In this document: piece after piece, positions 7,717 through 45,007 of the stretch | Numbering within the stretch: position 1 is the first letter of the stretch | Layout of the letters: every line of letters begins with the position of its first letter | DNA from: Podarcis melisellensis | Lineage: Eukaryota | Assembly (NCBI GenBank): GCA_964234715.1 | Contig: OZ174278.1 | Strand: one strand, 5' to 3' | DNA length: 64,000 bases | Program-made: the position numbers and the translations under genes | The notes under the pieces: generated by a model | The model's input: only the letters and a program-made list of their open reading frames with translations | What the model was told of the DNA's origin: nothing | Databases searched by the model: none

Positions 7717-7859
7717 AATCATAGAATTGTTGAGTTGGAGGGGACCATGAAGATCATCTTGTCCAACCCCCTGCAATGCAGGAATTTGTTTTTTACCCAA
7801 TGTGGGGCTCAAACCCACAACCCTGAGATTAAGATTCCCATGCTCTACCAAGTGAGCTA
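7717..7859 (-). mobile_element. SINE with tRNA-Lys(CTT)-derived head and CR1-type tail
   Basis: Minus strand reads tagctcacttggtagagcatgggaatCTTaatctcagggttgtgggtttgagccccacattggg, then attcctgcattgcagggggttggac...ttctatgatt. Confidence 0.8.
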
Positions 7860-8239
7860 ACAGTTTCTAAGCATTGGCCAGACCCAGATCTGCTTGGTTC
7901 AGCCAGAGGTTTTTCTGAATGGGACTTTAAGCCACATCTGGGGACAATACAGCAATCCAAAGAGTGGAGGCAGCATCAGATAAGCAAAGTTATTGTAACA
8001 GGGAGCACTGGAGGAAGACTTTAAGCCCAGGAGGCTTATAGAGGCTTTTAACTGAAAGAAGACAGGTCTGGGACTGCTTAGTAAGGGGTACATGCAAAGC
8101 AATGAACTATAAAGTTGACAGGCGCTTGGTGGAAGGTGGTACAATGCAAAAAAGAAGGTATTGCCAATGGGAGTTGCAGAGAAAACAAGTTTCTTAGCAA
8201 AGTGGTGAGACATTTCCCAACCAATTCAGATGACCATGC

Positions 8240-8395
8240 AATCATAGAGTCGGATGGGACCCCGAGGGTCATCTAGTATAAGTCCCTGCAAGGCAGGAAT
8301 CTCAAACACGCAGTTCCCCATCCAATTTGCAACCATATCAGATCCTACTTAGCTTTGCGAATGTACAGGCAGTTTTATTGCTGCACCACCAGCTG
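8240..8395 (-). mobile_element. SINE3-like element with 5S rRNA-derived head and the same CR1-type tail
   Basis: Minus 8355-8316 aagctaagtaggatctgatatggttgcaaattggatgggg aligns without gaps (29/40) to the vertebrate 5S internal control region aagctaagcagggtcgggcctggttagtacttggatggga. The shared tail follows. Confidence 0.7.
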
Positions 8396-8401
8396 GAGGG
8401 T

Positions 8402-8647
8402 GAGAGCCAGTGTGGTGTAGTGGTTAAGAGCGGTAGTCTCGTAATCTGGGGAACTGGGTTCGCATCTCCGCTCCTCCACATGCAGCTGCTGGGTGACCTT
8501 GGGCCAGTCACACTTCTTTGAAGTCTCTCAGCCCCACTCACCCCACAGAGTGTTTGTTGTGGGGAGGAAGGGAAAGGAGAATGTTAGCCGCTTTGAGACT
8601 CCTTAAGGAGAGTGAAAGGCGGGATATCAAATCCAAACTCCTCCTCC
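8402..8647 (+). mobile_element. Squam3-like tRNA-derived SINE
   Basis: A-box tggtgtagtggttaagagc, MIR/Ther1-like core gtgaccttgggccagtcac and tail aaatccaaactcctcctcc. A second copy lies at ~36408. Confidence 0.75.
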
Positions 8648-8654
8648 AGCAAGC

Positions 8655-9220
8655 AGAGAGGGAGGGGATTTTGGTTTAGCTTCCATTTTAAGGCAAGCCA
8701 GTCTAATGTACATTTCCCACAAAAATATGTGAGCCAAAACACAGCCATCCTTTGAAATTTGCAGTTCTCTGAATCTTGCACTGTACAAATTTTGTACTTT
8801 TTGTTCTCCAACAAAATGTCTATTTAAAATGTGTACAGTAGTACCTCTGGTTAATTTGTTCTGGAGGTCCGTTCTTAAGCTGAAACTGTTCTTATCCTGA
8901 GGTGTGCTTTCGCTAATGGGGCTTCAGGGTTAGTGGAGTGGAGCTTGTAACCCAAAGTGTGTTTAACCAGAAGGGTTCATAACCAGAGGTACTACTGTAT
9001 ACTAAGAGGGCACAAAGATACACATATCAGGGGAAATTGTCTGCAAATATGTGCATATAACTGGCAAAATCATATTTAAAATGAGAGAAATGTGCATTAA
9101 AATGCTAGTGAATTTTTGGGGGGGGACTTAATCTCCTGCCACAAATGGATGTGAAATGTCAGGAGCTGAATTTAAGAGCAGGAAAATGGGAAACTGAAAC
9201 TGAAACCTGTCCCACCCCTA
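8655..9220. mobile_element. Non-autonomous hAT-like element, same family as 19565, 38130 and 42815; interrupted by a Tc1/mariner MITE
   Basis: Shares motifs such as gccatcctttgaaatttgca and aaaatgctagtgaatttt with the other copies. Ends approximate. Confidence 0.5.
8836..8997. mobile_element. Tc1/mariner (pogo/Tigger-like) MITE
   Basis: Perfect 18-bp TIR cagtagtacctctggtta with a TA target duplication on both sides. Confidence 0.9.
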
Positions 9221-9241
9221 GGTTCAACACCTTCTTCTTAC

Positions 9242-9531
9242 CTGCTCCTTTAAAAGTGATGTGTTCTCCACTTTATCCCTTGTCTCTTCCTGTGTCCAAC
9301 AGCCTTGCTCTGGCTTGTCCTTCATCTCTGGTTGGTCCTGGCTTGCTTGGCCTGCCTGTGGCTGGCTTGTTGGGATCTTGACTTGCTGCTTTGGTTCCAG
9401 AGACTGCTTATCTTCTGACTCTTGGCTGCAGCTGCTGTCATTGCTCTTTGCCTCCCAAGTTTTCATTGTTGACTGAGAGGCATTTGTGGACTCCAGCTTG
9501 TTGCCTATTGTTGGTTCTTCAGTAATAGAAT
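9242..9531 (-). CDS. ARHGAP31: ARHGAP31 exon 11 equivalent (290 nt), DSITEEP...LLKEQ
   Basis: Acceptor tttttgcttctgatacAG and donor CAG|GTAAG. Phases 1 and 0 join exons 10 and 12 in frame. The sequence is poorly conserved, so the call rests on splice sites and phase. Confidence 0.82.
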
Positions 9532-10574
9532 CTGTATCAGAAGCAAAAAGAAGAGCTTTAAAAACTTCATTGGGCTGGGGGTGGTGGACCCAGAAATGGT
9601 GTAAGTAAAAGGTGAAAATGGTCACAAGGTGGCCTGAGCTTTCAGCGTGGGCTTCTCTCAATAGCTCCACATTGACTTTCCCCCTCTTTTCTTTATTTTT
9701 ACTGCAATAAGTTCAAAATAGACTAAAAAAAGAAAAAGAGATTTATGCAAATAAAATTTTGCAATAGCCAAGGCAGCCACATGCCTACATGAGAGCTATC
9801 CATGATTTCAATGGGTTTAAGAACACTTATGTCTATTCAGAAATAAATCTCATTAATTTCAATGGGTGAGTGTTCCTAAATAAGTGGGTTGGGTCTATTG
9901 CACCTCTTTTGAACTGAGTGTTCTGTTCAGTGATGTGTTTCACAAGAGACATCTGTACATTCATAGCACGGGGTTCTTCCCGACAGGGGATTAATTTGCA
10001 AGCTGCTTGGGGGCATCACTGCCAATGGCTCTGTTTTCCTTATTGGGTTTCCCCTGGAAAGGGAGAATCTGGATTAAATGTGGTGGGGGTGGGAATATGG
10101 GCTGACATTTTGGTGCCAATGTTGTGTGGGTGCTGCACAACACAGTCTGTAAGCTCTAGGGCTGGGCAATGTATCAATATATTGTCCAAACCCATTTTGA
10201 AGTCTATATTGCAATATCATTTTCATAATTTTAGACCTGGGAATATATCGCTTAATCATGGTGTGCGTGTGTGTGCACATGCTATGCAAAAATCACAATG
10301 TGGGAAAAATTACGAAGCCAACCAATGCTTCTCTCAATTTCTGCAGCTCCTGTTAACTCTGCTGGCTAAGCTCTCCCCTGCCTCCTACAGGAGGCAAATC
10401 ACAAGAGCAGGGACCAGCAAAAATCATGACGTGGGAAAAACCATGAAGCCAGTCAATGCCTCTACATAGCTCCATCCTTATTTCAGACATTGTGATATAT
10501 CAGTATGTTTAATCATTTCTCTTACTATGCTTTTGGAAGTGATTCTTTCAAAGTCCTTTAATGACTATGTGGGA

Positions 10575-10575
<1 letters not shown>

Positions 10576-10616
<41 letters not shown>

Positions 10617-10928
10617 CTGCACATCTGGCTGGGTTTCCCCAGCCACTCTGGGAAGCTCCCAACAGAATATTAAAAGCACGATAAAACATCAAACATTAAA
10701 AACTTCCCTAAACAGGGTTGCCTTCAGATGTCTTCTAAAAGTCAGACAGTTGTTTATTTCCTTGACATCTGATGAGAGAGCATTCCATAGGGCGGACACC
10801 ACTACCAAGAAGGCCCTCTGCCTGGTTTCCTGCCACATCACTTCTCACAGGGAGAGAACTGTCAGAAGGCCCTTGGAGCTGGACCTCGGTGTCTGGGCTG
10901 AACAATGGGGTTGGAGACGCTCCTTCAG
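10576..10928 (-). mobile_element. L2 LINE 3' fragment with (TAA)n tail
   Basis: Highly similar to 55113-55450 (catctggctg..tttccccagccactctggg, aaggccctctg). Lies 70 bp from the exon 10 donor. Confidence 0.85.
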
Positions 10929-10998
10929 CCACATCCAGCTGTTCCTTTCCAGGAGCAAGTTCTCTGCTCAAATTGCTGCAGCCTTCATATAAGCTTAC

Positions 10999-11619
10999 CT
11001 TCTACTGCTTTGGACTCGGGCTTCTTTTCTTCCTTGACGGTGGCATGCTCTGGCTTGCTGTGGCTGTCTGCTTCTGGGATTGTGGAAGCGGCGCTATCCA
11101 ACCCCAAGAAAGAAGATTCCTGTAGGCTCGAGAAGGTGGGCTTCTCTTTAGCCGGCATGCGGCAAGGAGTGCTGTTGATACTGATGACGGCAGACACCCG
11201 AAGGGGCACCGACACAGCAAAGGGCTCTGAAATGTTCAGAGCTTTGCGCTGGTGGCGAGGGGAGGCTTCCAGGGGGAAGAGGGTCCCATGGAACCCCGAT
11301 TTAGCCGTCCCATCATTGGAAGTGTAGAACATACGACACATCTTTGGGGAAGTTTGCTCATTCTCCGGGTCTTCTATGGCACGGAACACTTTCAGTTGCT
11401 CAGGAAGTGGTCTGACATGAGTAGACCGGGCAGCATCGTTCTGCCCACCATCCTCCAAACCACCTTCTGCTCCTTTCACAGCACCCTTTGGATCCCATTC
11501 GCTCTCCTGTTTGCTGAGGTCCGATGAGCTGCTTGGGCCCCCTGTCCGTGGTTTCATCACTGGAACGAAGAACCCTCCAGCCACGACGGTGCGCTTGAAG
11601 TGGCCCTTCTCACCATCTC
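10999..11619 (-). CDS. ARHGAP31: ARHGAP31 exon 10 equivalent (621 nt)
   Basis: Contains PEQLKVFR, SPRHQRKALNISEPFAVSVPLRVSAVIS.NSTPCR. Acceptor cttctccAG, donor AAG|GTAAG, phase 1/1. Confidence 0.93.
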
Positions 11620-11984
11620 CTGGAGAAGGGAGAAAGAGCAAAGCCACTGAGTATTGCCAAAGGTACCCTCATATTCCAAGCACATCTGGGGAAGACAGGG
11701 CAAGAGCCATCAGTCAGATAGAGTTCTTCTGGGTGCTTCTTCAAAGGTTTAGTCACTGAAGAAGCCTCTCTTATGAAGAGTTTCCCAAGTTTATAATGAC
11801 TGAGAAGATACGGCCCCAGCCAGAACAGATCAAAGGGGTATCAAGACCAACATTCCCTTTCCTACGATGGCCAATAGCCAGTTGCCCATTGTAGGAAAGG
11901 ACCTTCCATTATTTGGAAGAGGGAGGGATTTTACTTCTGGGTAGTACAGCCCAGAGACCCTGGTTTTGATTGACGGGATACCTA

Positions 11985-12650
11985 TTTTGAAAGATCTGCA
12001 TTGACTCTTCATTTCCAAGCCCGAGTTAAGGTGCTGGTAACTACCTTTAAAAGCCCTAAATTGCATAGGACTTAAATACACCAGGGAGTGCCTCTTCCCA
12101 TAGCAGCCTGCCCATGCCTTATGATCTTTTGAAGAGGCCTTGTTCATAGTTCCCTTTTTAGTACAAGTACACTACACTTCTATGGGACACGGGTGGCGCT
12201 GTGGTCTAAACCACAAAGCCTAGGGCTTGCCGACTGGAAGGTCGGTGGTTCGAATCCCCACAATGGGTGAGCTCCCATTGCTCGGTCCCAACCTAACAAT
12301 TCTAAAGAACGTCAAAGTGCAAGTAGATAAATAGGTACCGCTCCGGCGGGAAGGTAAATGGCGTTTCTGTGCACTGCTCTGGTTTGCCAGAAGTGACTTA
12401 GTCATGCTGGCTACATGACCCGGAAGCTGTATGCCAGCTCCCTCAGCCAGTAAAGCAAGATGAGCGCCGCAACCCCAGAGTAGTCCGCGACTGGATTTAA
12501 TGGTCAGGGGTCCCTTTACACTACACTTCTACAGAAGAGAGGGCATTTTCTATGTTGGTGCCCTGTTTTTGGAATGCCCTCCCTCTAGGCTCATCTTGCA
12601 CTGGCATGGCAAACCATTTAGTGCCTTCCTATTTGCCCTGGCATGTTAGA
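11985..12650 (+). mobile_element. Old L2 3' fragment interrupted by a Sauria SINE
   Basis: Decayed match to the L2 C-terminus (aaggtgctggt..acctttaaaagccctaaa, agggcattttct..ggtg..tggaatgccctccc). Ends approximate. Confidence 0.55.
12183..12519 (+). mobile_element. Sauria SINE (Squam1/POM-like), full length
   Basis: gggacacgggtggcgctgtggtctaaacc head, B-box ggttcgaatccc, tail ggggtccctttac. TSD ACTACACTTCTA at 12171-12182 and 12520-12531. Confidence 0.92.
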
Positions 12651-12994
12651 TTGCAGAAGATTTTTTGGAATTGTGTTCTGTCCTGCTTTCTTGTATTCTT
12701 ATTATACAAATGTGTTGCTTTTTAATTGCTGCAAGTTGGTTGGGTGACGAGCAGGAGGGGAGGCAAGGGGTTTGCCCCACACTCTCTTTGGCTGGGATTG
12801 GACTGGCTGTCTTTTGGTGGCCTTCCAAGCCTCTGATTCTGTGAACAGAAACACATTCACATACACACAAGAGCATGCAAAACTATTGGGATATTAAATA
12901 AACAAACCTATTACTGTGAACAAACATATACATTAAAAAAAACCCACAAAGGCCGCTTTAACAACCTCTCATGTGCATGCCAACAAAATCTCAC

Positions 12995-13054
12995 CTTCTA
13001 CTGGAAGTGAACACAAGGAGTCCATGCTTTTAGCTGGCCGAATGGTGACTTTTT
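12995..13054 (-). CDS. ARHGAP31: ARHGAP31 exon 9 equivalent (60 nt), EKVTIRPAKSMDSLCSLPVE
   Basis: Translated by hand because it is absent from the ORF track. Acceptor ctgcAG, donor AAG|GTGAG, phase 1/1. Confidence 0.93.
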
Positions 13055-14050
13055 CTGCAGAAAGAAAGGTTATAACACACTTAATTTAGTGCTCTGGGTT
13101 TTTGGGAGATTGAAGTGTAACTCCAGAATACAGTGCAATTACATGGAAACTAACTTTTCCAAGTGCAGTGTAGAAAAGGTTTTATTCTCCAGGGAAAACT
13201 CAGAGCAGCTTCATCTGTGATTTGAAGCTAAGAATGTCAGACTAGGGAAGAATGAACTCTTTCCTATTATTTCCACAGTTATTTTCCTACCTTGCTGAAA
13301 AGGGGCAATACATGTTTGGCATGTTTATCTGCCCAAATACAAGTGAATTTTTTATAGGGTTTTTCCAAACCACTAATTCTCCAACTTGCATAATTGTGCA
13401 TGGTTCGCCATTGTGCATAGTTTGGCAGCTTCTGTTTGGACACATTTTGTTTACTGAAGACACATATCTGTAACTGCAAAGATGCAGATAATATCAGTTG
13501 TGTCTCTTTGCTATTTCATCTCAAGGGAGAATGTAGGGGACCTAGTATAGCATTAATGAGATGTTAATTTCCCCGTAAGTAGATCCCTAATCAGGAGCAC
13601 AAATCAATACAAAGTGCAGACTCCACCAACCTTTCCCAGTATATTTTGGGACCAATCCTTGCTAAAATGACTGGCAGATACATATTCCTAGTAACAGAGC
13701 TCTGGCACAAATATTTGACCCCTCTAGCTGTTTGCATGTAGCTGGTTGAAGAGATGCATGTTCACCCCAGTACTATAATGGGGCGTATTCAGAGTCTTTT
13801 GCTATGACTGCCTCTCATTGTCCCACTGAAGGGATACTCCGTATGACGCATGAGGTTAAATATGCGATCTCCCCTCTGCTCCCTTCAAAAGTCTTTCTTG
13901 CCATCTCTGAAATCCTTCGAGCTTTATTAGCATGAATGCCCCCTTGCAATGTGGTGGAACATTTCTGTACTACACAAAGGAGGAGAGGCAAGGCTGAGCT
14001 AATGGAGGAAAGACAAGTCTCCCCCAGTGAGGGCCACAAACAATCCTTAC

Positions 14051-14175
14051 CAGAGAGCTTCTGTCCTCGGACAAACACACTCCCATTTCGACTCAGTTTG
14101 GTCTTGGCTTCTGATCCAGACCGGCCCAGGTTGAATATTGACTTCCACTTCTTGGATTTTGTGGATAACTTTCTC
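14051..14175 (-). CDS. ARHGAP31: ARHGAP31 exon 8 equivalent (125 nt), RKLSTKSKKWKSIFNLGRSG...
   Basis: Basic-rich region of CdGAP. Acceptor ttccAG, donor CTG|GTAAG, phase 2/1. Confidence 0.95.
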
Positions 14176-15209
14176 CTGGAAGAGAAATTTAGTATGATTT
14201 CTATGAAAAGCAAGTAGGCTCAATGTGTTTGTCTTGCAGCTGTCTCCATTCCATTTTTTATTTATTGCATTCAAACATGCAAACCTTTGCGCTCTCTCTC
14301 TCTCTCTCTCTATATATATATTCATTGTCTTATATAGGCAAGAGTAGAGGCCAATTGGCCCCATCATTTTCAATCAGAAATAAGCATCAGCAGCCTTTAA
14401 AAATTCAAGCTTTAATATTACATCAGGGCATCAAGAATGTCTCTCTCACACACATATTGCATGCATTTGCATATTATATGTATTATTATTATTATTCTTT
14501 ATTAGATTTACACCCTGCACCTTCCTCCAAAATTGCTCTGGGCAGCATATTTTATTCTAGTTCCAGGATTCAGGTTTTTCTTACATTTGGAGTTGACACA
14601 GCAGGGCTGTTTGTCATAAGGCAGGGCTATGTAACATGAAGGCAGCCTATCAGTTTTGAATAGTGGAACATAGGAACTCTCAATAGCCCTCCTGTTTTTG
14701 CTGCCTTCAGGGGCCGTGCACACAGAACACATTGCTGATGGGCTGCATTCAGTTTTCTCGGTTAAGAGCAGAGATATTGGAGAATTCTGACAAAAACAGG
14801 AGCAGGAATTGCTGGCGTTCACTTATTCATTCCATGTCTGGAACAAAAATGAATTGTAGTTTGCTAACGATATGTTGTCGGTGGCTTTCCCCTGTCCCCC
14901 ATTTGCCCTGCGTTTCCTTTGCACTGAAATGAATGGCGCTGAATGAGGTAATGATAATGCAACAAATTATGTAGAATTTTGGCACAGTGGACAGCGAGTG
15001 GAATAGTGTCGTTTTTGTCTGAAGCCAAATTGCTGTGGCACAGAAACACAGCTGCATGCAACGAATACGGGGCGGAACAGAAACCAGAACCTCCTTAAAT
15101 CCCTATTCACAAGTTGCCAAGACGTTCCATAAGGATTTCTACGATAATGTATGTGTAGTTGCTAAGATATTCTACAACATACTGATTATTAACATTCACG
15201 GTGGGAAAG

Positions 15210-15343
15210 ACTCCCCCGGAAGGTGGTGGACTTTCCTTCACTGGAGGTTTTTAAACAGAGATTGGGTGGCCTCTGCCATGGATAATTGAGATTCCTGCAT
15301 TGGACTAGATGACCCTTGGGGTCCCTTCCAACTCTACAATTCT
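15210..15343 (+). mobile_element. CR1-type LINE 3' end
   Basis: ccttcactggaggtttttaaacagag...gattcctgcattggactagatgaccc...cccttccaactctacaattct. This is the tail used by the short SINEs. Confidence 0.75.
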
Positions 15344-15354
15344 GTTTCGATATA

Positions 15355-15572
15355 CAGTGGTACCTTGGGTTAAGAATTTAATTCGTTCTGAAGGTCCATT
15401 CTTAACCTGAAACTGTTCTTAACCTGAGGTACCACTTTAGTTAATGGGGCCTCCTGCCGCCACCACCGCGCGATTTCTGTTCTCATCCTGATGTAAAGTT
15501 CTTAATCTGAGGTATTATTTCTGGGTTAGCGGAGTCTGTAACCTGAAGCATTTGTAACCTGAGGTACCACTG
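15355..15572. mobile_element. Tc1/mariner MITE
   Basis: TIR cagtggtacct / aggtaccactg with TA TSD. Same family as 8836-8997. Confidence 0.9.
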
Positions 15573-16164
15573 TACAATGCTTAGCTGGCCATGTGGGAGA
15601 AAGGAGAGTCTGACTGGAGCAGGCCCTGATGTTTTCTCTGCCTGCCTGACTCTCTTTTTTCCTTCCCATGGGGCAACTGGTCTCTTCAATTCAGGGCCAG
15701 TCACTTTCTCTCAGCCTATACTACCTCACGGGGTTATTGTGAGGATAAACTGGAGAGAGGGAGAATCGTGTTTGCCACCTTGAGCAACTTGCAGGAAAGG
15801 CAGGATAGAAATGTAAGACACAAAATAAGGTGAAATGACCTCAGGCCTCTCAGGACTAAATTCATCACAGCCTCTCATTCAAGCTAATGCTTCTTTGGAT
15901 TAATAAGTTTCCTGTGATGGTCTTACAAAGATGTTGTTATGCAGCGGCTGTAAGTTATTGCACACCACAGATTTGATTGAATACCCTAGGCACAGTAATT
16001 TAAGTAACTTGAAAGCAGTGCTGACAACTCCACGGAGGCCGGATGACATAAGGCTCACGTTAGCACTTCTGCCATCTTGCAAGAGTCTCCGCATTGTGCA
16101 CCTGGAATGAGAAGTAGGGCTCTCAGCTGCCCTTCACATACAAGAACAAATGTGAGGTACAGTA

Positions 16165-16167
<3 letters not shown>

Positions 16168-16215
<48 letters not shown>
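16168..16215. repeat. (GA)n microsatellite
   Basis: About 24 units, read directly. Confidence 0.95.
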
Positions 16216-16220
<5 letters not shown>

Positions 16221-16641
16221 CACGGCATGTGTCATTGGGGCAGGTCACCAGCAGGTGGCTCTCTTACGACAGACGTCTCAAGAACCGATTGCCATTCAGC
16301 TCACATTGATCAAAACTTGTAAATGAAGGAAAGTGGGAAAAGCCATTTCTCCAAAACAAGCCTATATTCGTCTCTTTTTTTCCTGACTAGTAAGAGACAT
16401 TTACACTGGTGGGGAGCCATAGCTCAGTAGTGACACACATGCTTTGCATCCATAATGCCCCAAGTCTCCACCGATAAGCAACAAAGAATGGAAAACAACT
16501 GGAAGGGCCACGGAGGATCACAGGGAGCACTGCTTGGCTAGAAGAGGCTCTGGTCTCCGCTCCCCATGTTCACGTGACAAGGGAAGCCTAGTCCATCTTT
16601 TGAGTCCAGCTTTCAGATAAGGGAGAGATGGAGCCACTTAC

Positions 16642-18629: not shown

Positions 18630-18787
18630 CTGTGACACAGGAAAGGAGGAGGTTGGAAGAGCAATCCCCAAGCCATTGCTTGTCAGGAACAGAATCATAG
18701 AATATCAGAATCCTAGAGCTGTAGAGTTGGAAGGGACACCGAGGGTCATCTACTGAAGTGTCAACCCCATTAAGCCTTCTCTGTACC

Positions 18788-18789
<2 letters not shown>

Positions 18790-18820: not shown

Positions 18821-18823
<3 letters not shown>

Positions 18824-26936: not shown

Positions 26937-28369
26937 GCTGCCTTAAGAGTTGGTAGCAGTAAGACAAGGTGAAGTCCAAAGCAGTATGAGCTTACAGTTC
27001 CTTGGTCAATTCAAAAGTGACGAGTGAATAGAAGTGGCGGTTGATGCCCATTAGGAGTGGCAAGGTAGAAAGTGACTAACAGAAGGCGGCAGAGCCAAGT
27101 ATTTCTAGTTTTGTCCCCACCTTCTACAAAGGCACTACTGAGACTCAGGGGAGGGAAGGAAGCAGGCAGGCTGTGCCACTCTCTGGACTGGATGTAAGGA
27201 AGAAAGCAAGCAAGTAGGAGCTAGCTGAAGGGAAACTAAAGTTGGTGGGGCAGTGCCCTATCTGCCCTGTGATGAACCAGCCTCCACTGGGAGAGGGGCC
27301 CTTGAAAGGGAAAGGTCACACCAAGGGACTGATGTTATGGTGATGGGCTGCATAGTCAGTCATGACAAGATGGAATGCTGCTCTCAGTGACAGGGTAGTA
27401 GAGAATAGAAGGAGGCAGAAGGCTTCAAATTATGCTCTTATCTCTGAGACCTCTTGGAAGGTGGTTATCCAAACTGCATTTGGACTCTACTGAGTGAGTT
27501 CCTGGCTGAGAAAACATCTGGTCAAACAACCGTACTGGTGTTAACTCTTCAGCTAATTGACATCTTGCCTCTGTAATACTTATGATAATAATTACATTTG
27601 TTGACCCTATTACAGGACCAAGGAACAGCTGCACAGTGCAGATTTTGACAACAGAACTTCTGGCCTATTGCTATGGCTCCTCCAACCTGCTCACAACTTT
27701 GGAGCTAATCTGTACTCATTTCCCCCCTCCTGAATCAAGTCATTACATTTTGCATTAAAGTTGTTTGAAGATTTCTGCTTGGACAGTTTCCACCTACACC
27801 CACCCTCTGCATTCATGGCATGACAATTTTGAACCTGATTTTCCACTGCTGTGCACCTTGACTCATTAACTTCAGCCTAAGCAGGGAGGAGAAAGTAGCT
27901 GTGCCACCAGAAAATATGCTGCTTTCACCCATTTTGCACTGGATTAAGTGACAGTAAAAGCCCCTGCTGATAAAATTATAATAAGAATCCACTGGTATAA
28001 GAATTGTGAAAGAAAGTTTTTTTTTTTTTAAAAAAAGAGAAGTTACCCAAGCCCTACTTGGAAAAAAATTATGAACAGAAATAGTGTATTATGAATTCCC
28101 AGAACTGAAGTTGGCTCTGGTTGCAAAAAATGTGTGGAGCCCAATTTTTATTTCATTTTTAAATCTTTGCTATTGCATCTTGTGACCATTATTATATGGC
28201 CTTTATAATTAACTGAAATTGTTTTTAAAGTATTCCTAAAAACAAATTGCAGGCAGTCCTTTATTAGGATTTTAGTGTGCTACTATATTCCAGTATCCTC
28301 CAACTTCTTCACATCCAAGACCTATCGTTAGTCCAAAAACAGCTGGAGACCCAAGTATGGGAAACCCTG

Positions 28370-28469
28370 ATCTAGTCCAACCTCCTGCAATGCGGGAATC
28401 TTTTGCCCAACGTGGGGCTTGAACCCACGACTTTGAGATTAAGAGTCTTATACTCTGCCAACTGAGCTA
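28370..28469 (-). mobile_element. tRNA-Lys(CTT)/CR1-tail SINE, copy 2
   Basis: Minus strand tagctcagttggcagagtataagactCTTaatctcaaagtcgtgggttcaagccccacgttgggc plus a partial tail. Confidence 0.8.
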
Positions 28470-28744
28470 CTCTTCCTATAGAAGAATCCTGTCCAAAGAA
28501 TCCTGAGAACTATAGTGTGTTAAAGGAGCCAGGAACTGCAGCTCTATGAGGAATAAACTACAGTTCCCTGGATTCTTTGGAGGAAGCCATGTGCTTTAAA
28601 TGTGCTTTATGTATATGACACATGTATAAAGTGATTTAACAATCAATTCCTCTTCCCAAGGAACTCTGGGAATTGTAATTCCGTGAGTGTGGTTGGGGGT
28701 CTCCTGACAACTGACAGCACCATTAACAAGGCCACTTCCACCTT

Positions 28745-30525: not shown

Positions 30526-30654
30526 NNNNNNNNNNNNNNNNNNNNNNNNNNNNNNNNNNNNNNNNNNNNNNNNNNNNNNNNNNNNNNNNNNNNNNNNNNN
30601 NNNNNNNNNNNNNNNNNNNNNNNNNNNNNNNNNNNNNNNNNNNNNNNNNNNNNN
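30526..30654. other. Assembly gap (129 N)
   Basis: Run of N. Confidence 1.
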
Positions 30655-34024: not shown

Positions 34025-35998
34025 ATACCACAAGTTATGGTTTGCCCCCAAAGAATGATCAGAGCTGTTGTTTGTTGACGGTGCTGAGAGTTGTTTAGAA
34101 GATCCCTGTTCTCAGAGAGCTACAATTTCTAGAGCTTTAACAATCAATACTTTTTCCCAGGGAATCCTGAGAATTGTAGCTACACCTCCCAGAATGCTTT
34201 GGATGACCATTCAAAGTGGTATCATAGCACTTTAAATGCCTGATGTGAAGCATTCTGGAACCACAAGTTTGGGGTGGGTTAGAATGGCATCACACACAAA
34301 AACTATATTCTCCTTTCCCAATTCGACGCTTTCCACTGCTCCCCTCCAACTTGACAAGAGAGATCTTTGTTATTCTGGTGCCAATTTACTTTGCTTTCAT
34401 CATCCTTTACCCATCTTCTTTCTAGTTTGCCACAGCCTTGACCTGCAATGCCAAATTTGGCATTCCAACTCTACACTTCCCACACCACTGCAGCCAACTC
34501 CCTCCCCTAACTCCACACACACCGTTTCCTGCTCTCCCAGTCCTTGAACTCTACAGAAAACAGCCTATTTTGTCAGACTATGCAGTGGTTTTGTGATGTA
34601 AAAAAAAAAAATTCCACCAGGGACTCGTTTTTGCTTCTGACCAAAAATTACAGTCCTGACCTCAAGTCCCTGGAGATGAAAGGGCTATGCATCAATTTCC
34701 TGCAGAGCCCAGCTCCTCAGTGCATTGATTGTACAAACGAAGAATACAAAAAAATGTTCTCTTTCAGGAGAGCCGAAATCCAGAAGTAGCTTTGCTCTGT
34801 GACACATTAGGTAGTGCTAGCAGGAGGTAGGGTTAAGATGGTAATCACTACATGGTAGGTCCTGAGATAATTTATTTCTGATTAGTCTGCAGAGGTCCTG
34901 TGCGGAAAGAAAACGAAACTCAGATCCATTTGCAGCAAGATCCGCACATGATACGTGTGGAAATGTAAATGGAAAATTCTTGAACTTTGAATAAGAACTT
35001 TTTAGTTGTTTCTTTGGGGGGGGAGAAGAAGGAGGAAAGCATATGTAGGCAGCGGGGAGGGAAAGGGATGGAGCTGGATGTCCCAATCTTCTCATGTCTA
35101 TAATTGAAACCATATTCAAGGCTTGGAAGTTGGAAGAGGCAGCTGGTGTCACACAGTTTCTGCTAGTTGTGCCAGGCAGCCAAAATGTCCTCATTTTACA
35201 ACTACAATAGAAACCAGATGTAGAAGAAAGGGAGAGTGTGGACCCCCGGCATCAGCTGGGAGGGGGAAAAATGAGTTGCAGTGAAAACATTTCTTTCTTT
35301 TATTAAAAAAATAAAATCCAAAAGTTGACCAAGTGTCATAGAAACACTCCCCCAACCTAGGTATTGTGTGATAACACATGTATCATAAACAGGTTCTGTT
35401 AAACCCAAACATTTCCCACTCTTGTCTATCTTCTTCCCATCTCCTTTGTGGTATGGGTGCATTTAATATTCCACAGCCTCCTGCTTAACAATGTTAGATA
35501 GCATTTTTCACTTGTTTCCCTCCTGTATACAAAAAATAAAAGAACTTTCTGTAAGCTGCTCAAATCTGTATTGAATTGCCAGTTTCTAGAAGCTCGGAGT
35601 GCAGGGATGTAAGGAGGCCGCAATTTCTGTTCTGGACTGCATTCATCACCATCGGTGCTGCTTCCGTTCAGCTGCAGTTTGGTTCTTGCCAAATACTACA
35701 TTATTCCTCTTGCTGTCTGCTATTTAATGTAAGTCATAGAACAACAGAATATTGGAGGTGATACCAAAGTTCATTTAGTCCAACCCCTGCAATGTAGGCA
35801 TAATAACAATAATTTTATGATTTATACTCCGCCCATCTGGCTGGATTGCACAGCTCAGTGTAAAGGAAATGTCAAAACAATGTTTAAAAAAGTAATTTAT
35901 TACATATCATTTGTGGACTTAGAAACAACAACAACGATGATGATGCTGTGAATGAATACTGATCATATTTGCTGGACCAATTTCTATCCTGACCGTAG

Positions 35999-35999
<1 letters not shown>

Positions 36000-36057
<58 letters not shown>
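36000..36057. repeat. Compound (CA)n(GA)n microsatellite
   Basis: Read directly. Confidence 0.95.
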
Positions 36058-36059
<2 letters not shown>

Positions 36060-36406: not shown

Positions 36407-36648
36407 TGTGGTGTAGTGGTTAAGAGAGGTAGACTCGTAATCTGGTGAACCGGGATCGCGTCTCCGCTCCTCCACATGCAGCTGCTGGGTGACCTTGGGC
36501 TAGTCATACTTCTTGAAGTCTCTCAGCCCCACTCTGAGCCCCAGTGTTTGTTGTGGGGGAGGAAGGGAAAGGAGAATGTTAGTCGCTTTGAGGCTCCTTC
36601 GGGTAGTGATAAAGCGGGAAATCAAATCCAAACTCTTCTTCATCATCA
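36407..36648 (+). mobile_element. Squam3-like SINE
   Basis: Closely similar to 8402-8647. Confidence 0.75.
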
Positions 36649-38129
36649 TCTGCAATATTGCACCCGCTTTAACATTTCAAATTATATTATAATGTGTTCT
36701 GAGTCAATGTGGCTTTTGTGCAAAAAAAAATATTTCACTGGTTATGAAGTATACCTCCACTTACTACTACCATTGGTGTGCCATCTTTCAGGAACAAGCC
36801 CTGCTCGAGAAATCAGGCCTATGTCCTTGTAGCTCGCTCAACCAAAATCCCAAATCTAAACACACACGCCCACACTTACAGTAGGACATAAATCAAACCT
36901 TTATTGCCTATTGATGATAACCTTGGGACGAGAACCTTGTAGTAGAAACTAGGAAGCAGGCGTCCAAACAAAATGTTATCTCCACATTTTCTTATGCAGT
37001 TTACTGCACCATGGTGATATACATCCATTTTACTGCACATGTAGCAACTTCCTTGCTTTAGCTTCTTTCTTTCTTTCTTTTAGAAGAAAACAGGGATTTG
37101 TTGCAAGCAATAAATATTGCATCAACTAGAGCTGGAAACTTCACATATTTACTTCCTAATTTGAAGGTCCAAGGACAGTTTAACCGAGAATTGTCATGAA
37201 AATTTACCTTTGGTCTTACATCAAGACAGCACACCCAATGGTGTGTAATGCATTTAAAAAGTGCAAATTCTATAATGAGGCAAATCAGATCCATTGCATG
37301 AAACAGGGAACTGGTGACCTATAAACCACTATGCCTTTTTGCACTAGAACAAATTATTTGGAAAGGCCTTCAAAGTTGCCCCATAAAAGGTATGCCTGTT
37401 TATGATGAATGTTTACCTATTGTAGATTCACACACACTTGGGAGGAAGATACATAGCAAAGGTCCTTATGGGGCAGATGAGAGACTACTAAGGACTGGAT
37501 ATGTCCCGTTTTCCTTTTAGACAGACCCACTGAGATCAGAGGATGAGACATGTCAACAGAACAGTGCGAGCGGATGTCTGCTCCACAGTGCCGTATGCAG
37601 ACAAAGGCCTTCGTTCTCCACAGCTGTCAAACCAACACCTCTCACCAGCATTGCATTTAGTTTCTAAATGAAGGGGGGGAATAACATGGACCAGCCCTCC
37701 TCTGCCAATGTTTACTTTGGCTAGGGTGGCGGGGCTGCTGGAAGTCCCAGGCACCTGTGTTTGAACAGGGAGATAGCTAACCAACATCAAACGGATTTAA
37801 AAATGAATCTCCCTTTTAAAACTTCCATGTTCACTTCCACTTCTGCTTGGAAGATGAACAGACAGGTCGACACTGCTGTGATCCTGGACTAGCTATGTAG
37901 CAGGTACTATTGCATCAGCCGCCTGTACTTTCCCACTTCATTTTGTTGGGCAAGTTGCTACAACACCGTGAGGCTTTCTGCAAAGGAAATTGAGCCGTTT
38001 ATCCCAATACTTAGATGGCAAGTGCTAGAATTCCTGCTGCTCCACCAGCAAAGTTATTTTAAAGCACAAGTCTAATAATGTCCAGCAGACATGTTCAAGT
38101 ACTTTATTAGCTCTCAGGGCTTGCCCTAG

Positions 38130-38540
38130 CAATAGGGGAGAAATTCGACGCCATTCAAATCCAAAGGCAAATCTACCTAATCTGCAATTTCCGAAACAAT
38201 CTGAGGACCCAGAGGTAACCATTCTTCGAAATTTGCACATCTCCCAATTTTGCCATGCTGTTCTCCAAGCAAGCAACGGGTACAAAAATGCATACACAGG
38301 GATGAAGTGTGTGTGAAAGGGCATACATCTGTGAAAAGGGGAAATGGCTTTGCACAAATGTGCAAAATTGGCAAAATTGCATACATGCATGTATATATGA
38401 GAATTTTATATCAAAATGCTGGTGAATTTTCATAAAGACTTTTTTTAAAAAAAAAAAAAAAGCAAAGTGATGTGCGAATGTGGAGAACTGAAGATTGGAA
38501 AAATGTGAGACCATGTTTGACAGATTTATCCATCTCTTTC
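38130..38540. mobile_element. hAT-like non-autonomous element (family of 19565 and 42815)
   Basis: Shares ggcaaatctacct, gaaatttgcac, aaaatgctggtgaatttt and ttcatccatc motifs with 42815-43400. Confidence 0.55.
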
Positions 38541-41209
38541 TTGACCGGAAGATTCAGGGGTTTAACCTCCTTCTCAGAGTCTCCAGCAGAAAGGTCAAGG
38601 GGGCAGCCATGTCCTCCCCGTCAACTCCCTCTGGGAACGATGGCATGTCATCAAGTCCTCTTGTTCCCAGAGGCACTTGCTATAACATCGTTTTGAACAT
38701 GTGTGGTGGTGGCGGCAGCACTAGCTAGGCACTTGTAGGCCACTGCAGTTGCTTTTGAAGGCAACCAGGAAGACAGAGTTGGAGAAGGATCCCTCAGGTC
38801 ACTTTGCAACCCATTAAAGGATTGTGCACATTTCTCCTGTTAATCTGTATGCAAAGAAGGTAAATCTACTTTTAGCCCTGTCCCATCCTGAACCAGGATG
38901 TGCTGGATTTTGCTCCTGGTGACATCCTACTGGGTTTCATGGGCATTTAGTGACAAATTGCTTGTTGTTTTTATTCCCACTGTATTTTTATTTGCTCTAG
39001 TGTTTCTAGTGTTTTATGTAGACACTCTACATTTTAACTTGACACTTGCTCTGAAATTGTTCACAACGAAGAGTGTGGTTGATGAGCTTTTCGTAAAGGA
39101 ATAATAAATATATAAATCAGCAGAAAATTCTACCACGAAAGTGCAACCCCAGGCACGATTCCAAGGGGTTTCAGCTCCATCAAGCTCAGTGGGGCTTTCT
39201 TTACATGCTGATGACTGCACTACACATTAGCCTGGTTGCTAAATTTCGGGTCATCACATCACACTCACACTGGGGTGCATCTGGGGCACATTTCAGTTAT
39301 ATTAGAATCAGAATTGGCAGGCTATGAAGCAGGCCTTAAGGAACAGTGCTGGGGAGACGCTCTCCCCAAAATGTCTGCTTCTGTCCTAATTGATTCCTTT
39401 GCCTAAATTCAGCCTCTGGTTACACCACCTGTTTATGTCAAGAACTCTTAACAAACTGCTTCCTCTTTTTCTCATTGCATGTACATTGCTTCCTTTCGGT
39501 TAAGTCGCCATAGTGACCCATCGTTGCTGTACCACCCTCCCACCAGATCTCCCACACGTGTTATCCCATTGGTCTACATCATTATAGAACTTAGGAAGGC
39601 TTGCTCTGATAAAATTTCAGAATGATACTTGACGAGTTCAGTTTAAACTTCCAAGGCACTCACAGAAAGAAGTAGCAAAAATTGGAAATGCACACACAAA
39701 GCAGCAAAAGTGAACAGGGGAAATTATAGTTCCGGAAATTTAAGAAAAGCAGGATTTTCCCATTCAATTACATGCATAGCTAGACCTTTAAATACACCAT
39801 TCTGAAACATATCTATACTAAAGCTTTCACTAGAGTATTTGAATACCTAACTAATACTTGGAAGTATGGAGCCCAGCTTTTCTCCCACTGAAATCCCTGC
39901 TTTCCCCTGGACACTGCTATGTGCTGCGATTTGTTCCTTGTTTTGTTTTCCGTTTCGCAGACCACAGGCACAAAATCTATCATAAGGGAAAACATGGCCT
40001 TTTCTCTCCCCGCTATCTCTGCTCCATGTCAGACCAGGTAGCGCTTATCATTTCCTCTCTACCACACACAGCAGCGTATATTCATTTCCTGCTAGCTAGC
40101 TCTAAATTACTGGCAGACATTGTTTCAGAGAGCTCTCTCTCTTTAAAGCAGCAGTAGTTGGGCTGCCCAGGGCTTCCTGTTGATGTCAGGTCCCACTTCC
40201 TCTTAAAGCAATGGAACTTCCTGTTAGCATATGTAACCTTTTCCATGAGAGCCATTTGCCTGCAGAGGAGATAAATAAATAATAAAAGAAAATAGTGGAA
40301 ATAGTAGGTAGGTTTGACTTGCCTTACATTTTCACAGGAAATCGATGGCTCCCCCCTGTTAAGGGAAAATGATAATATATCCAGAACAGAACAGCTATAT
40401 CTCTGTGATACCCGTGCTTACGAGTGATTTCCTGTGATGCAGAGTCTACATCAAAGACTGGTTATAGTCATTGATTTCTCACTATTACAGAATGCAGGAA
40501 TTACAGAGTTGCCAGTCAAAGGGTTAGTGTTACTTGTATGTAAATGTTTTTTTTTACTAGCATGACTAATTCTCTGGTGGTTCCCAATTAGCCCTTGTTT
40601 TTCAAAAGCCAAGCCATAGGCCCTCTACTTTTGAATATTTTGATATCTCTGTGGTAGTTTTTGTTATGTGAATGGTGCAACAGACACCTGGGAGGGTTAC
40701 CAATGGGGAACCACTGTTATAGAGTATTGGCGGAGAATCTGTGCCCCCCCCAGTTACTGTTGGGTTACAGTTCCCATCACTCCTGATCATTGGTCATACT
40801 GACTAAGGGCTGATGGGAGTTGGAGTCCAAGGATATCTGGAAGGCCATAGGTTATCTGACCATTCTAGAGGCTTCCAGTTAATTCTGTGGCTTTAAAAGT
40901 ACATGCACAGTTCTTCAGGGAGCAAGGCCACACATTGCCATGCTATTAGAGTCCATGTTGCCACGTTGAAAAGGGTGTAGAATAACGTTCACCTACACAT
41001 TTTTGCATCTGCAATAGCAATATTTCAGAAATCTCAAAGCATGTGAAATGTGATTCTATGGCTTTACACTTTTGGAACAATTCAGGATTCTCCATTTTTT
41101 GCACAGAAGTGGGAAAAGTGGGATGAGTGTATATACACACCATTTTCAAAGGGCTTTGAGCCCTTTGAAAAAACTAAGGTCTGCCGCAATCCCAATATGC
41201 AACTGCGAA

Positions 41210-41790
41210 TTTAGTTGGTAAAACACCAGAAGAATCCAAAGTCATTACAGAAGCACATATCCAGCATCTAGGTCCCATCAGAATAAAGAGATGGCTTTAA
41301 GCTGTTAAAACAATTGACGTGACCTGTTCAAGCAAGCAGGCCCAACAGAAATTCCAAATGACTAATGGTCTATCCCAGCCTGGGGAAAGCGAGAGTATGC
41401 AATTACTGGTGATAGGGCTACTGCTGATTTCATGAACAAAAGCGGACAAGGAAATCAATCATGAAGTGCAAGGTAAATTGAGAGAGGCAATTGGGATGCC
41501 AAGTGTGGATGCAAACGATACATCAATCTTCACACTAACTGAATTAGAAGTGGTTCTGAAGGCTTCTAAGGCTGAAAAGGCACAAGCACTTGATAAAACC
41601 CATTGCAAGTTTCTTCATCATCTTCGGCCCCATGTCAAAATGCACCACATTTCTTTAGCTTCCCTAACAGGTGCTTGAAGTACTGTATTACTCCTGATAT
41701 ATGGTAGAAAGGTAAAATTGACTGCAGTACTCCAACCTGGCTAGACTTTAAATGACGCACAAAGTTATTATCCAGTTGTTCTATTACATT
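41210..41790 (+). mobile_element. Degenerate Vingi/Ingi-like LINE RT fragment
   Basis: FTLTELEVVLKASKAEKAQALDKTHCKFLHHL...TPDIW*KGKI..VLQPG...AQSYYPVVLL resembles non-LTR RT domains 0-1 (K.PG.D.I..E.LKHL; W...K......KPGKD....SYRPISLL). Contains stops and frameshifts. Confidence 0.6.
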
Positions 41791-42048
41791 GGTTGAAAAC
41801 TTAAGAGCAGAAGCATTTTCACAGCTTGCCACACATCTCCACCAACATCTAATTTCCCCCTTACTTTGGTGAGGCTTGGGACACCGACACCAGGCATCTA
41901 AGCCAGAGGACCTGAAGCTATTTTTATTTATTAATTCTACATACATACACCTAAATCCCACCTCTCCTCCAAGCAACTCAAGGTGGCGTACATAGTTCTT
42001 CTCACCCCCTTTTTTATCCCCAAAACAAGCCTAACTATCATCTAAGCC

Positions 42049-42170
42049 AGTGTTTCCCAAACTTGGGTCTCCAGCTGTTTTAGGACTACAACCCCTGACC
42101 GCTGGTCTTGCTAGCTAGGGATGATGGGAGTTATAAAAAACAGTTGGCAATCCAAGTTTGGGAAATACTG
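42049..42170. mobile_element. Short palindromic MITE (related pieces at ~495-600, 25790-25900, 28290-28368, 40740-40860)
   Basis: TIR cagtgtttcccaaacttgg / ccaagtttgggaaatactg. Confidence 0.75.
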
Positions 42171-42199
42171 AATTCTAAAGCTTTTGGAGAGACCGAATT

Positions 42200-42626
42200 C
42201 AGGCCCGTCTCAGAGGTATGTGCCTATCTGTTCAGGCACCGGCCGAATTCCTTAGACCTCCCTCCGGCGACTCCCGGCAGGAATAAACATACTCGAGGTC
42301 CGTTCCGGCGATTTTCCTCAGGCTGTGAGGAAAACACACCAACTGCTTCTCCTCCTCCCTGCTCCCTGCATGTCCCCAGGGAGGGGAATCAGACACAGAC
42401 AGTAAACGTATCTACATGTCTTTATTTGTGTCTTTTAGCAGTCATACAGTAAAGATGTCTGCTCTCTTCAACAAAACAGAGAGAAACTCCGACTCCACCC
42501 ATGTACATCCTGTACAGGTCATATGACACACACACTGAGCTAACATCCGGTGCTCAGTACAGAATGGACTGCCCCTTTGTTCCCATGGCAACAGTCACAA
42601 ACTTCCTGTTTGGCTTTCCAGCCACA
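42200..42626 (-). mobile_element. Possible LTR remnant
   Basis: CpG-containing block that starts TGTGG on minus, with AATAAA on minus near 42421-42426. No TSD found. Confidence 0.3.
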
Positions 42627-42814
42627 AGCAGCAGACTTGGCTGCTATAGCCTTTGCTTGCTGCCGCATTGCTGCTTTAGAATAACACTATGGTTATTATA
42701 AGCAGGTCCTAAAAAAGAGTGATGCCAACATGGAAGAGTCACCTATTATTTCACCTATTACTGATGTTCAGGCTGTGAGTGCTGTATCTTATCTATCCAG
42801 CACGGCACCACCCA

Positions 42815-43400
42815 GTAGGGTTGGGGGAGTGATGTGAATCAGTTTGCATTTGCAGGCAAATCTACCTCATTTGCACTTTTCAAAAGAATATAAGAACCAA
42901 AACATGGCATCCTTTGAAATTTGCACTTCCCCGAATTTTGCAGAGCAGTTCTCCAGCCAAGTGACATGTACAAAAATGCACGCATTGGGGTTAAACTGTG
43001 CATAGATTGAATATATCTGTGAAAGTAATATACGGAACTGCAATATTTCGCTTTGTGAAAATTGCATATTAGGCCAAGTTGCATATGAACATATGCATAT
43101 TAGGAGAATCTGTACAAGAATGCTGATGAATCATAGAAAAGTTGGAAGAGACCCTGAGGATCACGCAGTCCAGCCCACTGCAATGAAGGAATATACAGAC
43201 ATCCCATACAGGGACTGAACCTGCAACCCTGGCATTATCAGCACCATGCTCTAACCAACTCAGCTGTCCAGGCTCCTGGTTAAAAAAAATTGCTTTAAAA
43301 AATGCAAACTGATGTGGAAATATGGATAACTGAACTAAAGACTGGAAAAATGAGAAACTGAGCAAAACAGAAATAGACAGATTCATCCATCGCTGCCCGC
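42815..43400. mobile_element. hAT-like non-autonomous element interrupted by a tRNA-Ile SINE
   Basis: Similar to 38130-38540 and 8655-9220. Confidence 0.55.
43129..43269 (-). mobile_element. SINE with tRNA-Ile-derived head and CR1-type tail
   Basis: Minus strand agctgagttggttagagcatggtgctGATaatgccagggttgcaggttcagtccctgtatgg resembles tRNA-Ile(AAT) agctcagttggttagagcgtggtgctaataacgccaaggtcgcgggttcgatccccgtacgg. The shared tail follows. Confidence 0.75.
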
Positions 43401-44869
43401 TATCCACAAGAGGGTGGGATCAGCAGACTTGGGGGAGCCCCAAGGTTTGCAGATGTATGGCACATCTTTAGAGAGGGAAACCTAAGTGGAGAGGGAACCT
43501 CAAAAACTGCCAGTGGTGACTGAGCTTGCCTAGTAGCCCTGGAATGCTGATTGACTGTTGGAAGAGAAAAGGTGGAGGAGGAACTCAAAGAGAGTGGCTG
43601 GAAACCTGAAGAACAGTTCCCCCTGATGCTGCAGGTTCTATTGTTGTTGTTTTTTCCATTCCTCAAACCAGACACTGTGAAACAAAGACATGTCTGGTGC
43701 CAAACTTCAATAGGTCCTTGGCATGGTGCTACAGATGCCTCTCTAGACCTCTGGTCCTCTGCTACGGCTTGTCACACACTTCTTTGAGATGTATTTATCT
43801 GGTTGGCAGCTGTGATGGCGTTGTTTGAATGGGAGCCAGGCCTTTGCTTTGATCTGTTTTGAGCTGTCATCATCTTAGATTGCCCAAACTGCTGTGCTTG
43901 GGGCTAGGCACGGCATTTTAGGCAACCTAAGAAGGAACTGCCTACAGCAGAGCCCGCCAGCAGCTCAGTTCCCATCCCAAAGCTATGTGGTTGCCTGTCC
44001 AACAGGATAAGGTGAGTGACTTCAACCCTCAAGATCCCCAGGTAGCACTGCTGCTTGCTGCCACTGCCAGTCACTCAGCTGCTATGCCTTGAAGTGAGGG
44101 TAGTGGTGCTTTTGGATGGGAGGAAACAAAGCCACCACTCAGCTCTGATGGGTGAATGGCTGGTGGTAGCAAGCAGCAGCACATGGTATGGTCACAATGG
44201 CCTTTGCAATGCCAGGTGGTGGTCCACAGTGTTTGGGTGAGTGGGGCTGGACTTGACTGCTCAACTACCCCAGGGCCTCACCTGATGTCTCCTTCCAAGT
44301 CCCAGGAACATCAACATGTGCCCAATCATGCCAGCTTTTGATGCCAAGGCTGAAGACAAACTTCAGCAAGAGAGAGATCTACTAAGTCAATAAATCTATG
44401 TACAATAGGCAGGACTTATGCGTCAACACTACAAAAAAGCAACTAGAGATAAACAACAGGGAGTGGAATCACCTTCATTGCTTTTAAGCTTCCAGGGGTT
44501 TTTAAGCTTCTTGTTGGTTACTATTAGAAACAGAATGCTGAACTCAATGAACTGTATATGCTTCAGCAAAGCAACTCTTAATTTTTGCCAGGCTGCCAAC
44601 TCAGGAACCTTTTAAACTATGACATTACAAGCGCTGATTTGCCCTTCTCGGCAGGAGATGCATTACTATGCTTATCAAGCAAAACTGTGAGACAGAAAGC
44701 CCACTAGATGCTGTGCAAGGGGTTTATGAGTTTCTAACTCTACCAATCTGCTAGTAAATTGCTCTAACAGACCCGGCATTTGACAACAATGGATTTACAT
44801 TGGCTCATAGAGCTGGATCATTATTTTATGTAACAACCATATTCTCCATCCAGCTTTCCAACCACACCT

Positions 44870-45007
44870 AATCCTAGAATTGTAAAGTTGGAAGGGACCA
44901 CAAGTACCATCTAGTCCAACCCCGTTCACTGCAGGAATCTTTTGCCCAATGTGGGCTCAAACTCACAACCCTGAGATTAAGAGTCTCATGTTCAACCAAC
45001 TGAATTA
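44870..45007 (-). mobile_element. tRNA-Lys(CTT)/CR1-tail SINE, copy 3
   Basis: Same layout as 7717-7859. Confidence 0.8.

Follow-up and report, generated by a model that had tools for sequence, protein, structure and literature searches.

How heads of unrelated origin came to stand on one and the same short tail is the question raised by a stretch of 64,000 nucleotides (nt) from the lizard Podarcis melisellensis (GenBank assembly GCA_964234715.1, contig OZ174278.1; the whole stretch is hereafter called the window). Five short elements in it carry heads resembling either transfer RNA (tRNA) or else 5S ribosomal RNA (rRNA). The reading that accounts best for them, to which we give a probability of about 0.8, is that they belong to several minimal ("simple") families of short interspersed elements (SINEs) mobilised by a CR1 long interspersed element (LINE). 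Each consists of an RNA polymerase III (Pol III)-type head, namely a copy of tRNA-Lys(CTT), a copy of tRNA-Ile or that part of 5S rRNA which bears the promoter, joined nearly without a body to a complete CR1 3′ untranslated region (UTR) of ~70 nt.

Five minus-strand elements end in a common tail

The window was searched with a tail profile (nhmmer) built from the five SINE tails, and heads were identified with the Rfam tRNA model (gathering score 29 bits) and the Rfam 5S model (RF00001). The five elements are as follows.

7714–7866, minus strand: tRNA-Lys(CTT)/CR1 SINE, copy 1; head 7794–7866 (Rfam tRNA, 36.6 bits), tail 7714–7789 (E = 3e-24)
8234–8397, minus strand: 5S-like/CR1 SINE copy; tail 8234–8303 (E = 4e-20), head 8304 to ~8397 with 5S motifs at exact spacing
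28364–28476, minus strand: tRNA-Lys(CTT)/CR1 SINE, copy 2; Rfam tRNA match 28412–28469 (39 bits), tail 28364–28403 (E = 2e-9)
43127–43278, minus strand: tRNA-Ile-like/CR1 SINE-type element; head ~43195–43278, Rfam tRNA match 43208–43265 (27.4 bits), tail 43127–43194 (E = 6e-18)
44867–45012, minus strand: tRNA-Lys(CTT)/CR1 SINE, copy 3; head 44943–45012, Rfam tRNA match 44951–45007 (26 bits), tail 44867–44942 (E = 4e-23)

The elements are 113–164 bp long and share a tail of ~70 nt. A first-pass annotation, made from the letters of the sequence, had described five short minus-strand elements with one tail, partial in one copy; the profile recovered all five, with the tail at 28364–28403 cut short. 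The Rfam tRNA matches place the heads of four elements with Pol III genes, and the fifth, 5S-like head shows box A and the start of box C at the spacing of 5S rRNA. No tRNA was called in the window by ARAGORN, because the heads are too decayed; the Rfam tRNA model did find them.

The shared tail is the 3′ UTR of CR1

The profile also detected four tails beyond those of the five SINEs, two of them at the ends of CR1 coding remnants.

15190–15343, plus strand: 5′-truncated CR1 LINE 3′ end; C-terminal remnant of open reading frame 2 (ORF2) at 15193–15285, tail 15288–15343 (E = 4e-14)
62760–63189, plus strand: second 5′-truncated CR1 3′ end, recognised by three-frame translation; split tail found by nhmmer at 62897–62921 and 63138–63189
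18707–18768, minus strand: tail-only fragment (E = 4e-9)
35734–35801, minus strand: tail-only fragment (E = 1e-7)

The tail consensus, taken as the majority letters of an alignment of ten tails (A1), opens with a hairpin of 5 bp (cctgc att gcagg), which is followed by a longer one (gttgga .. gaccc tcg gggtc .. tccaac) and by the 3′ end ..attctatgatt; its make-up is thus two hairpins and a ATTCTATG octamer. The final eight letters agree with ATTCTRTG, the terminal octamer of CR1 (PMC2612034). A hairpin together with the octamer forms the reverse-transcriptase recognition signal in CR1 and CR1-mobilised SINEs (PMC4316615; PMC5729268). Across the ten tails, 78.6% of cells paired in register, compared with 33–45% when the partners were slid.

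Translation of 15193–15282 gave a peptide C-terminus, LPRKVVDFPSLEVFKQRLGGLCHG, followed by a TAA stop codon at 15283–15285, and the tail sets in at 15288; its first hairpin has a 10-nt deletion. A search of a 1.84-billion-protein library with the 30-residue peptide returned 39 protein matches (best E = 7e-12), many of which fall at the C-terminal end of the matched protein. In one matched protein an RVT_1 domain lies upstream of the match, and the five matches that were looked up were all avian gene models, from the wood stork. A protein atlas queried with the 30-residue remnant gave only unnamed clusters, and a literature search with the C-terminal peptide yielded no paper.

The second fragment holds a frameshifted ORF2 C-terminal remnant whose frames read ..NFLVVRAV.QWNGL.. 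and ..SPSLEIFKKRLGGHLSWML. Its tail is interrupted by an unrelated insert of ~216 bp (62922–63137, plus strand), which is AT-rich, begins with a (tta)n-like stretch and separates the two hairpins. The tail-only fragment at 18707–18768 is 5′-truncated within the hairpin region and ends in about three octamer units, and that at 35734–35801, which begins with the first hairpin, follows immediately upon the AT-rich terminus of a different repeat.

In the CR1 fragments the tail sets in 2–3 nt past the ORF2 stop codon. The same tail therefore closes CR1 copies directly after their coding region, demonstrating that the SINE tail is essentially the complete CR1 3′ UTR. The earlier claim that this tail ends CR1 3′ fragments was thereby borne out, with ORF2 remnants directly upstream at 15193–15285 and 62760–62900.

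With regard to strand, every SINE copy (five in all) is on the minus strand, as are the two fragments that consist of tail only, and both CR1 fragments that retain a coding remnant are on the plus strand; this pattern may reflect an orientation bias inside a gene. An assembly gap at 30526–30654 lies ~2 kb from the nearest element and overlaps none.

The tRNA-Lys(CTT) form is an abundant family with a fixed junction

The three Lys heads match one another (E = 1e-7 to 7e-11), and all three show the anticodon loop ..cttaa.., in which CTT is the Lys anticodon; the three sites had been annotated correctly. The head of copy 1 matches the Rfam tRNA model over its full length and is separated from the tail by a short A-rich linker, and its tail ends in ..attctatgatt, directly followed by TTTT. 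Copy 3 scored below the gathering score. The three copies have one junction in common, ..ttgggc-aaaag-attcc.., and whole copies show 81–83% pairwise identity.

The tail of copy 2 comprises only the first 40 nt (profile positions 2–41) and stops after ..ggactagat at 28364. The missing part was not found downstream of 28364. With the remainder absent, the loss is better explained by a deletion than by an insertion. The cut tail passes straight into a short minus-strand fragment at 28325–28363 (..gggtttcccatacttgggtctccagctgtttttggac..), which resembles a piece of another interspersed repeat.

Evidence on abundance was drawn from Logan contigs of four sequencing runs, representing four related species, that matched positions 7400–8700 with at least 80% likeness. 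The summed contig depth, which is not a copy number and is to be read as an order of magnitude only, was ~8e5 over the Lys head and ~3e6 over the first tail hairpin in run X15, against a unique-sequence baseline of ~77–102; the ratios of depth to baseline were nearly equal across the four runs. Among contigs breaking at 7791, 298–395 per run continued from the head into tail sequence, implying that the Lys junction is common to the family. Contigs breaking at 7785 from the tail side continued into CR1 coding-end sequence. Past ~7859–7863 on one side and past 7717 on the other the flanks become random (loose ends in 288–429 contigs per run), and these positions mark the ends of the family. These results clearly show that the Lys form is a very abundant amplified family with fixed ends and a fixed junction in the four related species.

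The 5S-like form is a second multi-copy family

Two motifs were chosen a priori from vertebrate 5S rRNA, one covering positions 50–64 (box A) and the other positions 79–92 (start of box C). Both were found on the minus strand of the head, at 8340–8354 and 8312–8325, respectively, with three mismatches each, and their start-to-start distance of 29 nt equals that in 5S rRNA. Chance alone would give 1.27 and 7.2 matches per window for the motifs singly and ~7e-5 for the two jointly. The 5S-like part of the head spans ~8304–8370 and corresponds to 5S positions ~37–100. An ungapped hand alignment to 5S rRNA gave 35 identical letters out of 49 over positions 49–97, rising to 38 when the majority letters of the family were used.

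The head is multi-copy in all four species. Positions 8330–8365 were covered by 64–95 contigs per run, and the summed depth of two bins of the head was ~3.1e4 each in run X15 and ~300–400 times the baseline in all four runs. Where the majority letters of the paralogous contigs differ from the copy at 8234, five of six differences shift that copy towards 5S rRNA, as in the change from ..aagctaagTaggAtc.. to ..aagctaagCaggGtc... The motif spacing and these majority letters support derivation of the head, as judged by its letters, from 5S positions ~37–100.

In all four runs, joints leading from the tail boundary at 7785 connect the CR1 tail to the 5S-like head at 8305–8316, with few family-specific letters between, and a paralogous contig of 434 nt covers 8259–8389 and so crosses the junction. 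The 5S-like form is thus an amplified multi-copy family with a fixed junction. The first-pass annotation had named single-copy chance juxtaposition as a danger to its reading; for the 5S junction this does not apply, because the junction is shared by other copies in four species.

Head and tail are in direct contact at 8303/8304, leaving no space for a Deu or Sauria core. Because it lacks such a core and has a CR1 tail, the element at 8234–8397 is not a member of the DeuSINEs (SINE3/AmnSINE1) or of 5S-Sauria.

The 5′ end of the 5S-like element abuts a plus-strand, tRNA-headed SINE of the Sauria/Squam1 type at 8398–8650, which ends in (ctc)n. This Sauria-type SINE is by far the commonest repeat in 7400–8700, with a summed depth of 2–12 million against a baseline of ~90. 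The possibility that it had split the 5S-like element was considered and rejected, as no continuation was found past 8650. Each of the four runs also has a few contigs in which the CR1 tail's 5′ boundary (7785), inverted, is connected with the opening bases of this Sauria-type SINE (8400–8405); the matched sides are short (21–32 nt), and either a local match arising by chance or a neighbourhood that recurs may account for these joints.

The tRNA-Ile form is probably a SINE as well

The head at 43195–43278 carries the anticodon loop CUGAUAA, with anticodon GAT, at 43225–43231 on the minus strand, and its likeness to the Lys heads is weak (E ~0.005–0.01). Its score lies below the Rfam gathering score. 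The D, anticodon and T arms resemble those of vertebrate tRNA-Ile(AAT) with CpG decay. The head is, convincingly, a tRNA-Ile relic, in agreement with the annotated assignment. It meets the tail at ..gggatgtctgtat-attcc.., and the SINE reading is likely for this form too.

The usual vertebrate tRNA-Ile gene has the anticodon AAT, and tRNA-Ile(GAT) genes also exist. A G at this position of the anticodon is the expected trace of inosine-34 in a mature tRNA-Ile that was reverse-transcribed. This would suit a head taken up from RNA, but it is no more than a lead, because genes for tRNA-Ile(GAT) exist too. Two metagenome scans, one with the Ile head/tail pattern and one with the tail, gave no match in a collection that apparently holds no DNA of this lizard.

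Junctions, age and insertion sites

All three head types meet the tail within ~6 nt of one point of CR1, just past the ORF2 stop and at a distance of at least 2–3 nt from it. The letters before attcc are ..ttgag in the 5S form, as in CR1, and ..ag in the Lys form, and the Ile form begins at attcc itself. Junctions that are close without being identical would lean slightly towards separate captures.

Single orthologous contigs cross both the insertion at 7714–7866 and that at 8234–8397 in all four species, with 1–4% differences, so both insertions are older than the split of these species; for the same reason there is no empty site for comparison. The A and B boxes of the tRNA-type heads are recognisable and decayed. 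With a pairwise divergence of ~17–19%, decayed promoter boxes and orthologues in relatives up to ~4% diverged, the copies are old.

Weighing the interpretations

The Lys and 5S forms occur as dispersed copies with common ends and different flanks, each run of the four species yielding from 64 to more than 128 contigs. At their 3′ end the elements carry a CR1 3′ UTR with hairpin and terminal ATTCTRTG. Being multi-copy with shared junctions in the contigs of four species, these two forms are neither chance neighbours nor one-off chimeras. Several results nevertheless weigh against the reading as CR1-mobilised minimal SINE families. RF00001 gave no match at E up to 10, either in a 901-nt slice or in a 116-nt slice, and the first ~36 nt of 5S rRNA are unrecognisable in the head. 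No further Ile or 5S heads were found in the window, so that the Ile element is single there. The depth sums, as stated, convey orders of magnitude. None of the five copies was found to be flanked by a flush direct repeat of at least 6 nt of the kind that target-site duplication would leave. Finally, no covariation was detected in the ten tails, and individual tail folds were not better than those of shuffled sequence, a combination with in-register pairing that is expected of decaying copies of one source.

The failure of the Rfam model, even on the 116-nt slice, is also an argument for regarding 8304–8397 as not derived from 5S rRNA at all, that is, as an unrelated family-specific sequence or an extension of the 3′ region of CR1 with a chance likeness to 5S. 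In line with this, either motif taken singly is no less frequent in the window than chance predicts, and a loosely similar ..ttgggtggcc.. occurs in CR1 directly upstream of the tail. The two motifs nevertheless stand on one strand at exactly the 5S distance, and this joint rarity, the identities over positions 49–97 of 5S rRNA and the drift of the paralogous majority letters towards 5S make a non-5S origin very improbable. For the tRNA-Ile element, its single occurrence in 64 kb would suit a one-off chimeric retrocopy, formed by a single jump of the CR1 reverse transcriptase from CR1 RNA to tRNA-Ile, as in L1/U6 chimeras, and never amplified; the like-built Lys and 5S forms are, on the contrary, proven families, and we consider a one-off origin unlikely. 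A third alternative concerns the origin of the same elements: one ancestral CR1-tailed SINE may have swapped heads repeatedly by template switching, as argued for the derivation of PittSINE from TguSINE1 in passerines (PMC5729268). That the three junctions lie so close together agrees with such swapping, their differing letters (..ttgag, ..ag and a start at attcc) speak against it, and the small number and the decay of the copies in the window leave no basis for recognising diagnostic tail nucleotides that SINEs would have and CR1 would not. Head swapping is a tentative possibility, somewhat less favoured than an even chance. As regards the mechanism of head acquisition alone, repeated capture of heads from the LINE and exchange of heads between SINEs fit the observations equally well.

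For the reading as CR1-mobilised minimal SINE families, these results modify several statements of the first-pass annotation. The 5S head is upheld in part, by its motif spacing and multi-copy nature, limited to positions ~37–100 and with no match to the Rfam model. Repeated capture by one CR1 lineage holds as far as chimeras of Pol III-type heads with a CR1 3′ end are concerned, but not as to separate captures, which head exchange between SINEs (PMC5729268) would replace equally well. Similarly, heads of both promoter types are present, type 2 in the tRNA heads and type 1 in the 5S-like head, but a working type 1 promoter does not follow from a partial 5S sequence that fails the Rfam model. 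Parallel SINE families are upheld for the Lys and 5S forms (multi-copy, shared junctions, four species), but not for the Ile form, single in the window.

Proposed mechanism

From what is known of CR1 and its SINEs, Pol III would begin transcription at the internal promoter of the head, pass through the tail and end in a run of T in the flanking DNA. The CR1 reverse transcriptase would then bind the hairpin of the 3′ UTR, use the terminal ATTCTRTG repeat for priming where the target is nicked, and copy the RNA into the genome. The founding fusions would most likely have arisen by template switching, the reverse transcriptase leaving CR1 or SINE RNA for a small RNA, an origin that has been put forward for PittSINE (PMC5729268) and for LINE/snRNA chimeras (PMC4494074).

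Relation to known elements and novelty

The closest likeness is to TguSINE1 and PittSINE of passerines (Suh et al., 2017; PMC5729268), which are minimal elements with a tRNA head (Ile or Asp) on a CR1 3′ UTR that has a reverse-transcriptase-binding hairpin and an 8-nt microsatellite. There too, several heads stand on almost one tail, and template switching has been put forward as the means by which heads were exchanged (PMC5729268). TguSINE1 of the zebra finch provides the precedent for tRNA-Ile with a CR1-X tail (PMC3747384), and PittSINE that for tRNA-Asp on a near-identical CR1 tail (PMC5729268). Compared by description rather than sequence, the lizard set differs in host lineage and CR1 subfamily, and adds tRNA-Lys and 5S-like heads.

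The lizard elements have just a 4–8 nt linker, whereas in the comparable turtle element a body unrelated to tRNA separates the head from the tail; the two are set apart by this description. The turtle element, the tortoise Pol III/SINE (Cry I), is alike in its tRNA-Lys-derived head and CR1 LINE 3′-end tail (PsCR1) (PMC3747384). A 5S head with a CR1-like tail is known from SINE3/AmnSINE1 (PMC3747384). These DeuSINEs, with a CR1-4_DR-type tail, and 5S-Sauria/SINE-1_Pmo of squamates have in common with the lizard 5S form a LINE-derived tail and a head of 5S origin, probable in the lizard form, that would supply a type 1 Pol III promoter; 5S-Sauria combines its 5S head with a tail of RTE type. In contrast, the lizard 5S form has no Deu or Sauria core and keeps only 5S positions ~37–100, and its tail is an amniote CR1 3′ UTR, not an L2-like or Bov-B/RTE end. 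L1/U6 chimeric retrocopies (PMC4494074) resemble the likely founding event in that a small Pol III RNA is fused 5′ of a LINE 3′ end. They differ in being independent events with variable junctions; the lizard Lys and 5S junctions are fixed over many copies, which indicates amplifying families.

Each combination of head and tail thus has a published precedent in another vertebrate, and the novelty implied by the first-pass annotation was overstated. The mechanism is ordinary, and SINEs of this kind are known from turtles, songbirds and fish. Among published squamate SINEs (Sauria/Squam1, Squam2, Squam3, Anolis SINE 2, SINE2-1_ACar and 5S-Sauria) none is CR1-tailed, and no CR1-tailed squamate SINE was found in the searchable literature, Repbase, Dfam and SINEBase not having been queried; for families this abundant, it is quite possible that a library entry already exists. 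It is doubtful that all of the following hold jointly: that the elements form an uncatalogued squamate set of CR1 minimal SINEs whose different heads number at least three, perhaps four (Lys, Ile, 5S and possibly Asn), fused a few nt from the ORF2 stop; that the set includes the first simple 5S/CR1-3′ UTR SINE of amniotes; and that the GAT anticodon of the Ile head is an inosine-34 record of capture from RNA.

Significance

The general knowledge of how SINEs work is unchanged by these findings. If the families are absent from repeat libraries, their insertions, scored as present or absent, could serve as phylogenetic markers within this group of lizards, and their description would improve repeat masking, in which the heads at present probably pass for tRNA pseudogenes and the tails for CR1 fragments. 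In that case they would also offer a second natural system, after passerines, for how the CR1 reverse transcriptase acquires Pol III heads. The presence of 5S-headed beside tRNA-headed forms on one tail would make it possible to compare type 1 with type 2 promoters directly in their effect on the success of SINEs.

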